DNA of 64,000 bases from Vitrella brassicaformis CCMP3155 (lineage: Eukaryota; Protista; Chromerida): contig CDMY01000258.1 of the NCBI GenBank assembly GCA_001179505.1, positions 62,001 through 126,000 on the forward strand, given 5' to 3'. The notes beneath the pieces are model-generated. The model had not been told where the DNA came from. It did not search any database and was given only the letters and a program-made list of their open reading frames with translations. Positions 3,177 through 10,961 of this stretch are shown here, piece after piece (the first letter of the stretch is position 1; each line of letters begins with the position of its first letter). Made by a program: the position numbers and the translations under genes.

Positions 3177-6100
3177 ATGGCATCGGGCCATCGTGTCCGC
3201 CTGCTGATCCTGCTGGTGGCATCTCTCTGTCTATGTGCGACGGTGACAGCTCAGTGGTTTGGTGGCCGCAGCAGCCGTGCCGATACTGCCGATTCCGAGC
3301 CTGCTCCAGCCGCCGATGAATCGTCGCGTCGCAAGTGGTGGCACCTGGACAATGAGCCTGTAGAGGACCTCGGCGCGCCTTCCCCAACGCTATTCGGCGG
3401 CTCACGGGCAGCGGGACAGGACGAACCGACTACCACAAGCCAGCCGTGGTTTGCAGGCCTGTTCCCGCCATTCGGCTTCTCCTCTCAGCCGGCCAAAGAT
3501 GCCTCTGGTGCAGAGGAGGGCCTCAAGCCACTCAACTCCAGCAGCTTGGAGGGCTCAAACGGGCGCATCATCTGCCTGTTCAATGACGACATACAGAGCC
3601 ACCAGGAGACCAACCGCGCCACCCTGCTGAGCGACCTCCGGTCAGCGTGGCGTGACCGCACCGCTGAGTGCCGCGAGCCGTTCGGAAGCCGATTCCTGAG
3701 CTCACTGGGCATCGAGATCTTCACGGTCCAAGAGGAAGCCCAGTACGGCTGCCTGAAGGACCTGCTCACGCCCTATCAGGACATGGTCACGTGCACGCCA
3801 TCCTTCCTTTTGACCCGCATCTTCCAAGCACAGCCGACCGGATTCCTCGGCGGCATCCTCAGCAACAACGCTCCCAGCGGCGACCAGCAGACAGTGACCA
3901 CCAAGAAGGCCGACGGGCCGATGTTCGCCGGTGCGAATCGCGGCAACAAGACCACCCAGCGTGAAGACTTCGAGTGGTTCAGGAACGCCAATGACGTCAT
4001 CTTCGGCGGCGCGAGTCAGCTTCAGAACGTCCTCAAGGCATATCAGCAGTCGGACTTCGCCAAGAAGGAGGAAGAACAGAAAAAGGCCGCCGCTGAGGCC
4101 GAAGCAGCCAAGGCCAACAAGAACACGGGCAGCGGAGCAGTGTCCACACAAGCTGTGGGAGCGGGTGCCATCCCCTTCGACCAAGGCGCGCTGGGAGATA
4201 TCGCCAACGCTCTGCCGCAGCAGGCCATCCAGGAGCTGAGCCCGCGGGCCAAGGAGCAGCTGCAGGTCGTCAGTTCCTTCATCGGCACGGGAATGGACTA
4301 CTTCATCAAGGCCATGCAGGGCATGGCGCCCACACCGCTGGAGGGGCTGGCGGGCGCGGGAGGGCCTGGCATTGGCGATGTGCAGCAGGCCGTCGCCCTT
4401 TCGGCCGAGCAGGAGTCAGAGGTGCAGCAGCCCCACGGCCGCCCATCCGACAACCAGGCAGGCGGGCTCTTCGCCCGCAACAGCCGCGAGATCCCCCACA
4501 ACGGCATCGATGACGATGGCAACGGCTTCGTTGACGATTTCATCGGTCACGACTTCACCAAGCCCCCTCAGCAAGGCGGCAGCGGCTTCAGTGCCGCAAC
4601 AAAGGACGGCAGCCACGACACGGCAGCAGGAGTGCTCTTCGCCGGCAACTGCCAGCGCAAGATCGACTTCACCAACCTGGGCTCGCTGGCACAGGGCGAT
4701 GGGTGCAACGCCAGACGCCTCGGCCGGGCGCCACGGGCCATGCCCCTGAAGGTGTGGAGTGAGGAAAGGGGCGGAGCCGATCTGGCTGACGTGCTGACGG
4801 CCATAGACTACTCGGTTCAGCGCAATGCGTCCATGGCCTACCTCCCTCTTGGGTTCGGCGACTTCCCCTCACTGCAGCAGGCCAAGGAGGGCCCCCGCAT
4901 CCTCAGGACGGCCATCCACAGGGCCTCGCGTCACGGCCACGTGTTCGTCATCCCATGCGGCAACGAGGGCATCCAGCCGCAGCTCCAGTCGACGCTCAAC
5001 CTCAAGGAATACGTCGAGACCAACCTGTGTGACGTGCCGGGTGCGGCCGTCCTCTGTGTGTGCTCCATTGATTCCGCAACCGGGCAGCCGACTGATTACA
5101 CCAACATACCGCTCCTCACCCGCAATGTGCTGTGGGCCCCCGGCAGCCTTCTTAGTGTCGACTCATCGGGCAACCAGACGACCTTGACGGGCACCAGCCT
5201 CGCAGCCGCCTCCGTGCTGGGCACAGCAGCCATGGCACACGCAGCCCTTGGAGACGTGGCGACACCGGATCTCCTCTTTGCGTCCCTTCTGAGCAGCGAG
5301 CGCGAGGTCTTCGCGCCAGGCCGGCCTCTCAGCAGCGACGTCGCGCAGGAGTTGTCGCAGATACAGCACAGCAAGGCAGCGGCGAGAGACGCGACACGGC
5401 GCCGTATGCAGGCCGCCGCCCCTGCCGTGTCCTTTGTCGACATCGCCAGAGGAGCTGCCAACCTGGCGTCGGTCGCGGGCCCTGCAATTGCCAATGCTCT
5501 TGGAACCGTTCAGGGGCAACAAGCACCGCCACCGGCAGCCCCAGCTGCTGCTGGGGCTGCTGCTCCTCCTGCTGTTCCTGCTCTTGCTGGTGCGGCGGGG
5601 AATGGGCGCTTGGTGCAGAACCTGGGAAGGCTGGTCGATCCTACTGCATCATTGCTCAGCGGCATCGCTGCGAGGAACGGAATCGCCCCCCAAGGTTAGC
5701 AGCGAGCCACGCAATCGACTCATTCATTCTCTGCTCACTCTCCGGCTTTCTTTTGTATGTATGTGTGGCGCCTTTCTCTGTGTCAGGTGCTGCGAGTTGC
5801 CTGACGAAAGACACTATGCTGGTCGGCGGCACAGTGCTCGGCACACCCAAGGAGTACCAAGCCGCCAACCAGTGCCAGGCCGTGTGTCAGCAGACGGCCA
5901 CCCCCCAGCAGTGCACGGCATTCTCTTTCAAGGCCCCCAACGAGTGCACCCTCTTCAACAGCCCCACGGCCCAGAGCTCCACCCCCGGCACCGTGTCAGG
6001 CCCGGCATTCTGTCCGCAGCCACAAGCAGGGGCGCAGAGCGAGCAGGTGGCAGCGTTGGGAGCTTTGGCCCCCGGCCTTGCCTCTGCCGGGAGTCTCCTC

Positions 6101-8517
6101 CTTCCGGGCGCGGCGGCGCCCCTCAACTTGGCTGGGCTGGGTGCTGGTCTGGCGAGCAGTGGTACTCTAGTCGGCAATGTGGCGGCTAATCTGCCTGGTA
6201 TTGTGTCGACAAGCGCAAAGGCGCTGTCCACCGGTTTGGGGGCGGCGAGCGAGGTGGCCAAGTACGTGGACTTGGCCAAGGCGGCCGAGCTGGTGACACT
6301 GGCGAGGGACAACGGTGTGTTCAAGCGGCTGCCGGTGTCCAACCCCATCCCAGACCTCAAGATGCAGAGCCTCCCGCCACAAGGATGTAAGTATGGTGGC
6401 AGGGGGAGGGATAACAATTCAGTGGGTGGTGTGGTGTGAGTGTGAGTGTGGGTGGGTCATGTCATGTGTGGATGTCCGTGTGCAGCTGGTAAGCCCAAGA
6501 TCGACTGTTTCAAGCAAGGCATGAAGTGCTGCATCCCACTGGCCGCCCTCAACGGACGATACGAAGGCAGATTCGCGTGAGCAGCAAAAAACAGAAAGAA
6601 GGAGACGCACTCCCACCGCCGGCGATGCCCGACCACTTTGTCTCTTTCTGTTTGCAGGCCTGCCTTCTTGAGCGGCACTGAGCAGTGTTCGGCGACCCTC
6701 TCGAGCGACATTTTCAGCAACCCCAATGACTTCGGTGGTGACGTGTGCGCCACGGCCGTCTTCAAGGGCGAGGGCAACTGCGGCATGCGCGTCTACGACG
6801 CCGGCCCCACCAAGCTCTACGAGAACGAGCTGCGCCACCGTGGGGCCAACAACAATGTCATCTGCCGCTGCTGGCTGACCAAGAAGGAGGACGGGGACAT
6901 GTCGGTCAAGGGCGAGGCCACATGGGAGGTCACTGTCCAGGCCGCCAACGGCAGGACGGGAGAGGGAGCCGAACTCGGCGCCCTCGGACAGGCTGGAGGA
7001 CTGGTGGAATTTTTGGGATCTGAGGAGGGCCAGGCGGCCCTCTCGGGCGCCGGACAGCTGCTCAATCAGGTCTCCGGCACTCCCGCTCCCCCGGGAGCCA
7101 GGCCGGTGGCTGACATGCCTGTGGTTGGGAGGCTCGACGGGGCGATCGATGCCGTCAACGCCTACGATTTCCAGTCGGGCAGCTTCGCCGACACACTGAG
7201 GGCCCAGTCGGTGGATGAGGTGGACACACCCGGCGGCAAGGTGGCCGTCACACTGCTCACTGGTACGAGGGAGGGTGTCGAGGACGTCAAGGACTACGTG
7301 GACAGCCAAGCGCCGGAGAAAGGTTCAGGCAGGCGCTTGCTCCAGCAAGTGGACGCACCTGACGCCAGCATCAGCCCCAAGTGCAGTGCGTGGCTGTGGG
7401 CTAACCACGTGTATGCGAGGCGGTCACACTGCGAAGAGGCGCCGCTCGAGTACCAGGCCGTGAATGAGCAGTGTGCACCTGTCGAGCTGGTCAAGGACGG
7501 CTGCCCAGCCACAGATGCAGTCAACTTGAGGATGGTATGCCCACTGACCACATGCACTGCACTGCACTGGACGAGGAGGATCTGCATCCATCCCATTCAC
7601 TCTCTTGTTCGTTCGTGTGGCTGGGTGTGTGTATGTTTTGTCAGTGCGCATTGTCGTGCGGGCTGATGTGCTTCAAGATGGACAAGCTCCGGTGGTGGGA
7701 CGCCGCCCCCTACCGCCTGCACACGGAGTTCATCACCTACCCCTCCGTGCCGGCCCTGCGAGCCAACCTCGAGACCAGGTGCCCGGACTTCCTCGACGCA
7801 CTCCTGCAGAGCAACGACACAGGCATCCTGCCCATGGCATCACTGAGCCCACAGAGACGGCAGCTTCAGCGACGGCAACCACGGTGGCGAGACGCACGAG
7901 AGAAGAAGGACGAGGGAGACACCAGCAGCCCCACCGGCCCACCGTCTCTCGAGGACTTGGTCAACGACGGCCCTCTGGACCTGCTGCCAGCTGGAGACAT
8001 CCCTTCATCGGCAGCGGCAGATGGCACGTCTTTCGTCGAGCTGGTCTCCGACCTCGGCAACTCGGTCGTAGCGCTCGTCGCTGAGGAGGACCTGCCCCTG
8101 CTGAAGCCATCGCCATCGGAGGACCCCATGGCAAGTCTCGCCAACACATTCGGGGCCTTCCTCGGCGCGTCCCCCAACGCGACCAACGCGACGGATCGGT
8201 GGGCGGGGCTCTTCCCCGAGGGCGCGCGGGAGGAGCTGGGCATCGTGACGTTCAACCAGATGACGGGCGTCATCATGTCGGCCATCGTGGACGAGGGCAA
8301 GAACGTGGTGGGGCCGGTGTTGCCCAAGAAGGGGTGGGAGCTGGCCGAGGTGCTGGCGAGGCCCGAGCTGATTCGGTGGCGCTATGACGTGCCGCTGTAC
8401 ACATTCAGCAAGGTGATGGAGTTCATCCCCAGCCCCAACGATGACGGCGTGGCGCTCGACCTCATCCAGAGGGAACAGCTGGGGCTCACCCTGCCGCAGC
8501 TCGACACACGCAGCTAG
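3177..8517 (+). CDS. Secreted subtilisin-like (S8) protein fused to PAN/Apple and Cys-rich domains; 5 exons (3177-5694, 5787-6386, 6486-6576, 6658-7534, 7645-8517), ~1652 aa
   Basis: Signal peptide MASGHRVRLLILLVASLCLCATVTA. S8 motifs EIPHNGIDDDGNGFVDDFIGHDF, SHDT, PLKV, CGN and GTSLAA. All four GT-AG introns join in compatible phase (1,1,2,0), and the exon sum of 4959 nt is divisible by 3. Exon 2 has a 6-Cys Apple pattern. S8 identity is firm; the join across exons is inferred from phase. Confidence 0.8.
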
Positions 8518-8673: not shown

Positions 8674-8973
8674 NNNNNNNNNNNNNNNNNNNNNNNNNNN
8701 NNNNNNNNNNNNNNNNNNNNNNNNNNNNNNNNNNNNNNNNNNNNNNNNNNNNNNNNNNNNNNNNNNNNNNNNNNNNNNNNNNNNNNNNNNNNNNNNNNNN
8801 NNNNNNNNNNNNNNNNNNNNNNNNNNNNNNNNNNNNNNNNNNNNNNNNNNNNNNNNNNNNNNNNNNNNNNNNNNNNNNNNNNNNNNNNNNNNNNNNNNNN
8901 NNNNNNNNNNNNNNNNNNNNNNNNNNNNNNNNNNNNNNNNNNNNNNNNNNNNNNNNNNNNNNNNNNNNNNNNN
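8674..8973. other. Assembly gap (300 N) flanked on both sides by poly-G + AAC
   Basis: Seen directly. Both flanks read (G)n-AAC, which suggests a break at one homopolymer. Confidence 0.99.
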
Positions 8974-9441: not shown

Positions 9442-10410
9442 TCACCCCTGCAGCAGATTGCTAAGCATGCCCATCAGGCCGCCCGACGCATTGGCGTCCT
9501 TGACGCCAAACACGTCCCCCTTGATGACCTCCAGGTACCTCGCGAATGAGGGGTCTCGCCTGAGCACCAGCTGGTACTTGGTCTGCACCATCAGGAAGAA
9601 ATCCCAGTCGTTGAGCCGGCACGCCTCGGCAAGCAGATAGGCAGCCTGGAGGGCCGGCGGGAGGCCGGGGTCATCCAGGTCAGACCCGATAAGTGATTCG
9701 ACGAATGTAACTGCGGTGGGAATGTCGTTCATGGAGAGGACCATGAGGGTGGTGCGGAGGGGGAAGAGCGGCGCCTCGCTGGGGTAGGCCTCGGGCTGCC
9801 ACTCACGCACCATCGCCGCCAGGTCACAGCCGTCCTTGCCAAACACCAAATGAAGCTGCACGTACCGTACGTACGCGACACACAGCACAATCGACTGATT
9901 CTTGACCAGTCTCTCTCTGTGTCGGTGTGTGTTCGTGTTGCCGCCTACCTGAGCACTCCCGAAGTCCTTCTCTGCCCAGTATGCCTTGCCGGCTGCCGTG
10001 TGTAGCATCGGGTGGCCATTCGGGTAGGGGCTCTCCGCCCCCTCCTGCCCCTCGAGTGGTGTTGTCGACGTCCACTTGATGGCCTTGTTGATGAAGCGGT
10101 ACTTCTCCTTGGTCGAGTGGGGCGGGCAGGCCTGGAACAGGGCCACGATCGTCTCTAATCGCTCGGCGGTGACGCAGGGCAGCCTGTCGGCCTCCTCTTT
10201 CCAGAGGTCGATGAGTGTGATGGCCAGATCTGCGGTCAGGCCGTACTGCTCCTTGGCGGCAAACTTGAGGGCGAAGTCGGCGCACAGCGAGGCCGCCTCG
10301 TCCCTCTTACCGCGGGCTGTGAGGCGGGAGATGTAGCTGGTGAGCACCTGGTGCGCGTCGTAGAACTGGCCGCGATTGATGCGCTTGTCAATGTTGGCTG
10401 CGGTTGTCAT
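9442..10410 (-). CDS. GET4: GET4 (Golgi-to-ER traffic protein 4 / TRC35) homologue, 2 exons, intron 9856-9948
   Basis: KRINRGQFYDAHQVLTSYISRL, ADLAITLIDLW, NGHPMLHTAAGKAYWAEKDFGSAQLHLVFG, SEAPLFPLRTTLMVL, FFLMVQTKYQLVLRRDPSFARYLEVIKGDVFG and GGLMGMLSNLL match the GET4 family pattern. Confidence 0.88.
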   Translation of the reverse strand: MTTAANIDKRINRGQFYDAHQVLTSYISRLTARGKRDEAASLCADFALKFAAKEQYGLTADLAITLIDLWKEEADRLPCVTAERLETIVALFQACPPHSTKEKYRFINKAIKWTSTTPLEGQEGAESPYPNGHPMLHTAAGKAYWAEKDFGSAQVGGNTNTHRHRERLVKNQSIVLCVAYVRYVQLHLVFGKDGCDLAAMVREWQPEAYPSEAPLFPLRTTLMVLSMNDIPTAVTFVESLIGSDLDDPGLPPALQAAYLLAEACRLNDWDFFLMVQTKYQLVLRRDPSFARYLEVIKGDVFGVKDANASGGLMGMLSNLLQG

Positions 10411-10961
10411 GCTGCTTCGCTGGCTGATTGGATTGGATTGGTGGCTATCTTGATGCATTCATTCGAAGTGCTCCTGACGCATTTTTCGCTTGTCGCTCTA
10501 ACCCGTTTTGACCTTGGAGCCTTTGCGATCGCACCTGTCCACCTTTCTTTCCCAAAATACACGCCATCACTTTCGTCTTTACAGTAGCAACACGCACAAC
10601 AGTCTACACAAGGTAAGCAGCCACAAATCCCATCCCTATATTATGTACACAGCAGCCCATAGTTCCCCTTTCTCTCGCGATGATGAAAATGGAAGCGCAT
10701 CAGCGTCACGCAAACAGCAAAACATTCGCAGGGCGCTGTGAAGCTCTGCCTTTTCGTTGTCCGCGGTCAGCTGAGGCACATCCATCTTTTTCATCACACA
10801 AGGAACCGAGGAACGGACAAGGCAGACGGACAGACGGTGGAAGGCACAAGACAGAGATAAGATCAAGGAAGCAGCCAATTGCACCCAAGGCCAACTGCAC
10901 CCAGGGCCAGCCAGGAAAGCCAGCAGGCAGGCAGAGCGACGTCCTGCCCTGGCTGAGTGAG

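Follow-up and report, generated by a model that had tools for sequence, protein, structure and literature searches.

PCSK9 works by binding and not by cutting, with its prodomain still attached. In the wider apicomplexan lineage, Plasmodium PIMMS2 is a subtilisin-like putative pseudoenzyme of the ookinete surface with degenerate catalytic motifs, and its function partly survives the mutation of triad residues (PMC5520436). The SUB1 proteases (PvSUB1/PfSUB1) and deseasin MCP-01 have the triad aspartate and pass the Pfam S8 model. Apple/PAN domains are present in the adhesins TgMIC4, EtMIC5 and Sarcocystis SML-2 and in factor XI. Here we analyse a predicted gene that joins parts of these known kinds. 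It occupies positions 3177-8517, on the plus strand, of a 64,000-nucleotide stretch of the free-living alga Vitrella brassicaformis CCMP3155 (contig CDMY01000258.1, positions 62,001 to 126,000); this whole stretch is called the window and all coordinates refer to it. The conserved combination of the parts is undescribed in the literature found: searches on the family, on the gene identifier and on zona pellucida (ZP) modules in apicomplexans returned no description.

Comparison with relatives and with a paralogue makes us confident that the locus is one five-exon nuclear gene. Its product, of about 1652 residues, is probably secreted and soluble and belongs to an old family shared by chromerids and apicomplexans; it is composed of a probably non-catalytic subtilisin domain, an Apple domain, a Cys-rich region and a C-terminal unit. 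A preliminary description of the locus had proposed a single secreted chain of about 1650 residues with subtilisin-like and Apple parts, and this proposal is backed by the introns of the paralogue and by relatives with the same module order.

All searches, alignments and fold predictions were made with single exons, one at a time. An open reading frame (ORF) of 840 amino acids extends from 3177 to 5699, where it is closed by a TAG (5697-5699). As had been suggested, the frame can be continued beyond this stop through a donor at 5695 and four phase-compatible introns; the ORF, the splice sites and the phases are confirmed. Exon 1 (3177-5694), which lies within this ORF, holds 839 codons plus one base. 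The donor CAAG/gttagc opens intron 1 (5695-5786; 92 nt, phase 1), whose acceptor finishes at 5786. Exon 2 (5787-6386) encodes the Apple/PAN domain, an Ala/Gly/Leu-rich linker and a conserved stretch ending in LPPQG. Intron 2 (6387-6485; 99 nt, phase 1) leads to exon 3 (6486-6576), where 29 full codons with three cysteines start the conserved Cys-rich module. After intron 3 (6577-6657; 81 nt, phase 2), exon 4 (6658-7534) contributes nine cysteines and two conserved blocks, A (residues 26-145) and B (residues 233-286), with a variable linker between them. Intron 4 (7535-7644; 110 nt, phase 0) precedes exon 5 (7645-8517), which comprises 290 codons and the stop codon at 8515-8517. All four introns have GT-AG ends, and with phases of 1, 1, 2 and 0 the frame remains open up to this TAG. 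Exon arithmetic (839+1+199+1+29+1+292+290) gives a product of 1652 residues. Public gene models for this gene and for its paralogue on contig C613 may be missing or different.

An exhaustive protein search found the best relatives of exon 1 in Cryptosporidium muris (CMU_016980), C. canis (KAJ1606442), Cardiosporidium cionae (KAF8821751), Selenidium serpulae, S. pygospionis (GHVN01002188), Rhytidocystis pertsovi (GHVQ01013212) and Polyplicarium translucidae (DN2851). The long relatives have 1164-2338 residues and none of them gives a Pfam S8 match. In all of these except the C. muris model, a PAN_1 domain stands just after the subtilisin-like stretch. Exons 2, 3 and 4 are matched in order by the relatives in differing combinations (exon 2 in four, exons 3 and 4 in four). 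Exon 3 finds its matches in order in the Rhytidocystis, Cryptosporidium, Cardiosporidium and Selenidium proteins, and phmmer values for exon 4 against three relatives range from 3e-19 to 5e-12. It had been claimed that apicomplexans hold subtilisin and Apple modules in separate proteins. This claim does not survive for this family, since Cryptosporidium, gregarines, Rhytidocystis and Cardiosporidium carry both in single chains with the same module order. The fusion is thus not an algal peculiarity.

The apicomplexan proteins resemble the Vitrella protein in their degenerate subtilisin domain (Gly at the Asp position), their one PAN domain, a small Cys-rich piece and blocks A and B. They differ from it in that most have also lost the His and the Ser, in their longer insertions and, in several cases, in a tail resembling a glycosylphosphatidylinositol (GPI) signal. 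Such a hydrophobic tail ends three of the parasite relatives and is absent from the Vitrella copies. Conversely, the calcium-loop-type D-D-D-G-N-G stretch found in true subtilases is preserved in the Vitrella copies, in which exon 5 also opens with three additional cysteines. For the Cryptosporidium orthologues, the annotation goes no further than 'large extracellular protein with a signal peptide'. At its 3' end, one C. canis orthologue model (P0161) has been fused with the adjacent gene for TRAPP subunit 5, and unrelated TRAPP proteins are thereby drawn into its 90% cluster.

The fold of exon 1 was modelled with AlphaFold2. Confidence, given as the predicted local distance difference test (pLDDT), exceeds 85 at residues 125-215 and 430-710. 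A putative signal peptide (3177-3251) forms the N terminus, the only strongly hydrophobic stretch of the protein. It is followed by a disordered stretch, a prodomain-like α/β unit (about 3537-3821), a long linker and the subtilisin-fold domain (about 4242-5306), after which comes an Ala/Pro-rich linker. Foldseek relates the model to subtilisins with an expectation value (E) of 4e-10, and subtilisin BPN' aligns with it at 261 of its 275 residues. The best structural matches in VIA are PvSUB1 (Z 29.2; 309 residues aligned at a root-mean-square deviation of 3.1 Angstrom) and MCP-01 (Z 29.0). Uncleaved pro-subtilisin E (Z 28.6) and PCSK9 (Z 27.7) match over model residues 129-764 and 121-761, respectively. 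By these matches, both a prodomain-like unit and a catalytic-type domain are present. PCSK9 shares this pairing of prodomain and subtilisin fold; it differs from the window protein in its intact triad, in cleaving itself once and in an unrelated C-terminal domain.

At the sequence level, exon 1 is 32% identical to a true S8 protease (P0001) over 258 residues, and the family profile matches solved subtilisins in a PDB profile search. With exon 1 as query, a word-index search returned a single weak S8 match; the same search with the family alignment returned nothing beyond its own first sequence. Exon 1 has no match to the Pfam S8 model (PF00082) at E up to 10, and in this, as in the missing Asp, the window protein is unlike the SUB1 proteases and MCP-01.

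Active-site positions were assigned from an alignment of 70 sequences (A2) that combines the family with true S8 enzymes. The position of the catalytic Asp of subtilases is taken by Gly370 (4284-4286), in a FIGTG segment whose aligned counterpart in true S8 enzymes is the I-D-T-G motif. The strand that carries it (residues 365-370) is modelled with a pLDDT of 91, and an insertion of about 50 residues directly follows. A Val in the motif preceding N-S-R-E-I-P was also considered for the Asp position and was ruled out, as both alignment A2 and the model place the strand 50 residues upstream. His480 (4614-4616) aligns with the catalytic His, and Ser674 (5196-5198), in a G-T-S motif, with the catalytic Ser. 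Both are retained in the two Vitrella copies and in S. serpulae; in the other relatives the His is replaced and the Ser position holds Gly, Ala or Tyr. Asn596 (4962-4964) aligns with the oxyanion-hole Asn. This position is Asn in both Vitrella copies, S. serpulae and Cryptosporidium, and Asp in several relatives (gregarines, Rhytidocystis and Cardiosporidium). At the Asp position, every family member in the alignment has Gly, which places the loss of the Asp before the divergence of chromerids and apicomplexans. Judged from these residues, the subtilisin domain is probably a non-enzyme whose fold has been kept. The processing module envisaged in the preliminary description is an unlikely role for it, given Gly370 in Vitrella, its counterpart in all relatives and the missing Pfam S8 match.

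The conserved residues bear on a rival reading, in which the domain is still a weak or specialised hydrolase whose Ser-His pair and oxyanion Asn process the protein itself or a partner in cis. This would account for the presence of His480, Asn596 and Ser674 in both Vitrella copies, which are 61% identical over exon 1, and again in S. serpulae, and for the complete subtilisin fold. We nevertheless consider it unlikely. The glycine at the Asp position is universal in the family, most relatives retain the domain without the His and the Ser, and not even a threshold of E 10 brings up a Pfam S8 match. Removal of the triad Asp is, moreover, known to lower subtilisin activity by orders of magnitude, as Carter and Wells reportedly found in 1988 (cited in PMC5520436).

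Downstream of the probable non-enzyme, exon 2 is assigned to the Apple domains on sequence and profile evidence, and this assignment holds. The six cysteines between 5798 and 6013, already singled out as an Apple domain in the preliminary description, correspond to exon 2 residues 4, 29, 33, 42, 53 and 75 and have Apple spacing. The exon passes the Pfam PAN_1 model narrowly (22.3 bits against a cut-off of 21.4); in the relatives, PAN_1 scores reach 35.7 bits. The family profile also matches solved Apple domains, with values of 4e-8 for factor XI, 2e-7 for EtMIC5 and 4e-6 for TgMIC4, and of 4e-8 to 7e-5 when the Sarcocystis adhesin SML-2 is included. In contrast to these proteins, the window protein has a single Apple domain inside a far larger chain.

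Evidence that the parts belong to one chain comes from the parasite proteins. Stretches that are contiguous in the parasites span junctions 2, 3 and 4; in Vitrella they are interrupted by the introns and are restored only by the predicted splices. Across intron 2, the LPPQG that ends exon 2 aligns, together with the junction codon and the first part of exon 3, with one unbroken conserved stretch. Across intron 4, the spacing from G-C-P to P-Y-R-L is 37 residues once spliced, against 36 in Rhytidocystis. The number of cysteines per exon is three in exon 3, nine in exon 4 and four in exon 5, about 16 in total, and the odd counts make sense only in a joined chain.

The first junction is where an alternative with two genes would have to break the chain: a subtilisin-like gene would end at the TAG at 5697-5699, and a separate Apple/Cys-rich gene would follow it, the two being conserved only as neighbours. 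The ORF does run into the stop at 5699, gttagc is not the commonest form of a donor, and no Vitrella transcript was found for the locus. However, the frame of exon 2 offers no in-frame ATG from 5156 until 5816, a position past the first Apple cysteine, so that a stand-alone downstream gene would have neither a signal peptide nor a complete Apple domain. The paralogue has its donor at the same codon, and the complete transcriptome ORFs of S. pygospionis and R. pertsovi hold both parts in one chain. We therefore regard two separate genes as very improbable.

The paralogue, on contig C613, is a second full copy with five exons in the same order and on the same strand. All four of its introns have GT-AG ends and interrupt the same codon positions in the same phases (intron 1, with 74 nt, included), and its stop lies at the place equivalent to that of the window gene. 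The likeness between the two copies ends at the predicted splice sites. DNA identity is 0.58, 0.67, 0.80, 0.72 and 0.60 in exons 1 to 5, against 0.54, 0.55, 0.55 and 0.46 in introns 1 to 4, which is close to the level of shuffled sequence (0.47 for intron 1). The proteins are 61%, 57%, 76% and 65% identical over exons 1 to 4. Rates of synonymous substitution (dS) are similar in every exon (0.82-0.98), and the ratio of non-synonymous to synonymous rates (dN/dS) is 0.15-0.38 per exon, with exon 3 at 0.15. Similar dS and low dN/dS in each exon fit a history in which the unit was duplicated once as a whole and each exon has since been under purifying selection. That the locus is a decaying duplicate without function, as a third and clearly decayed copy might suggest, is hardly credible, given five open exons, intact splice sites and this range of dN/dS. 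The third copy (C791:258174-260877, minus strand, within C791:256500-263500) is nearest to the C613 paralogue; its decay shows in frameshifts, in the truncation of its Apple domain and in a deletion that starts in exon 2 and reaches into exon 4.

The second half of the five-exon gene is less easily classified. Exons 3-5, scanned separately, have no Pfam match, and PDB sequence searches with exons 4 and 5 gave nothing meaningful. Exon 4 shares 17 invariant columns with its relatives (alignment A3). In exon 5 the Cys-rich module ends, and a basic stretch (7855-7875), an acidic, Pro-rich linker and a conserved C-terminal unit around 8398-8480 follow; the exon has no hydrophobic tail. The likeness of the C-terminal unit to the parasite tails is visible by eye, but its E-values are not significant. 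The three closely spaced cysteines at the beginning of exon 5 are specific to Vitrella. Two further domains had been suggested for this region. A second Apple-like domain finds no backing, as exons 3-5 have no PAN match and the contiguous relatives have a single PAN stretch. The preliminary description had made its reading depend on PAN/Apple scores of the Cys-rich exons, and these are obtained for exon 2 and not for exons 3-5. Nor is the proposed ShK-like segment supported: neither exon 4 nor exon 5 nor any of the contiguous relatives gives a ShK match, although a domain split by intron 4 could escape such a search in Vitrella.

Two basic motifs were noted in this half. R-R-L-L-Q (7331-7345), in the variable linker of exon 4, is a putative cleavage motif that resembles sites of the Plasmodium or Toxoplasma export element type (PEXEL/TEXEL) or dibasic ones. 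In the paralogue, L-L-Q is preceded by five Arg, and an Arg-Arg-(x)-Leu stretch lies close by in several gregarine relatives. The second motif, R-R-Q-L-Q-R-R (7855-7875), follows the Cys-rich region and may be a furin-type site; at the corresponding place, the paralogue has four Arg in a row.

One lead reads the Cys-rich half, from exon 3 to early exon 5, as a genuine ZP polymerisation module with a basic cleavage site behind it. We hold this tentatively and think it somewhat more likely to fail than to stand. The likeness to animal ZP module proteins consists of language-model neighbours, a profile match to ZP-C and the basic stretch after the Cys-rich region. In a language-model search of named clusters with the Selenidium region, nearly all of the ten matches shown were ZP families (scores 0.80-0.84). 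With hhalign, the region of the exon 4/5 junction matches a Pfam-scored ZP-C piece of another Vitrella gene at E 0.0014 over 47 columns. In contrast to the animal proteins, neither the window locus nor the C613 copy has a match to Pfam ZP-N (PF23344) or ZP-C (PF00100) in a six-frame search of the whole genome. The relatives have no match to the Pfam ZP models at E up to 10, and no ZP protein is among the PDB profile matches of the family. A search of three Vitrella ZP loci with the hidden Markov model of the family found nothing, and pairwise comparison with the Vitrella ZP-N pieces gave scores no better than chance (z from -0.8 to 2.8).

These ZP loci are other genes, on which the Pfam ZP-C or ZP-N models do score (C553:146929-147222, C272:38089-38565 and C227:67005-67175); one ZP-C match is above the cut-off, with 29.9 bits. 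In the cases of C553 and C227, a hydrophobic stretch, perhaps a membrane anchor, lies just downstream; no paralogues were found for the C553 gene. If the ZP lead were true, the family would be one of filament-forming coat or wall proteins older than the chromerid-apicomplexan split, in which the dead pro-subtilisin and the Apple domain would serve as latch and ligand-binding head. ZP modules would then occur outside animals, and Cryptosporidium and gregarines would gain a ZP-type surface polymer.

Independently of the ZP lead, we infer that the Vitrella protein is secreted and acts without catalysis in a matrix or wall, its subtilisin part no longer cutting. Self-cleavage is probably impossible without the Asp, and the prodomain-like unit would then probably stay attached. 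The subtilisin-fold domain could serve as a binding or scaffold module and the Apple domain could bind a sugar or protein ligand, while the Cys-rich half may mediate assembly in an extracellular wall or coat. PCSK9 and PIMMS2 provide precedents for such non-catalytic use of a subtilisin fold. PIMMS2, an extracellular protein of the same wider lineage, shows that a degenerate subtilisin can work at a parasite surface with no reliance on its triad. It differs from the window protein in having a transmembrane segment and no Apple domain; PbPIMMS2 also nominally retains Asp, His and Ser.

Several points weigh against this picture of the gene and its product. Neither a Vitrella transcript nor an annotated protein was found for the gene, and a collection of 15 billion proteins holds no match below 1e-30 to the window protein or to its 63%-identical paralogue. 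Both Vitrella copies retain the His, Asn and Ser under purifying selection, a possible sign of residual chemistry. Exon 4 alone, folded with an alignment of eight rows, reaches a pLDDT of 36, and its Foldseek matches are noise. Lastly, the binding, scaffold and wall roles are reached by inference only.

The results define a conserved extracellular family that links a free-living alga to early-branching parasites. Among these is Cryptosporidium, whose orthologue is a large protein with a signal peptide and a GPI-signal-like tail. The loss of the Asp predates the chromerid-apicomplexan split, with the fold kept as a probable non-enzyme. The introns also support a gene model at a locus for which the public protein collections yielded no product.

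In the neighbourhood, an assembly gap of 300 N (8674-8973) begins about 155 bases past the stop codon and has G runs on its flanks. Beyond it, an ORF on the minus strand (9442-10458) encodes a homologue of GET4 (Golgi to ER traffic protein 4; Pfam E 1.4e-42), with an odd internal stretch that may be an unspliced intron.

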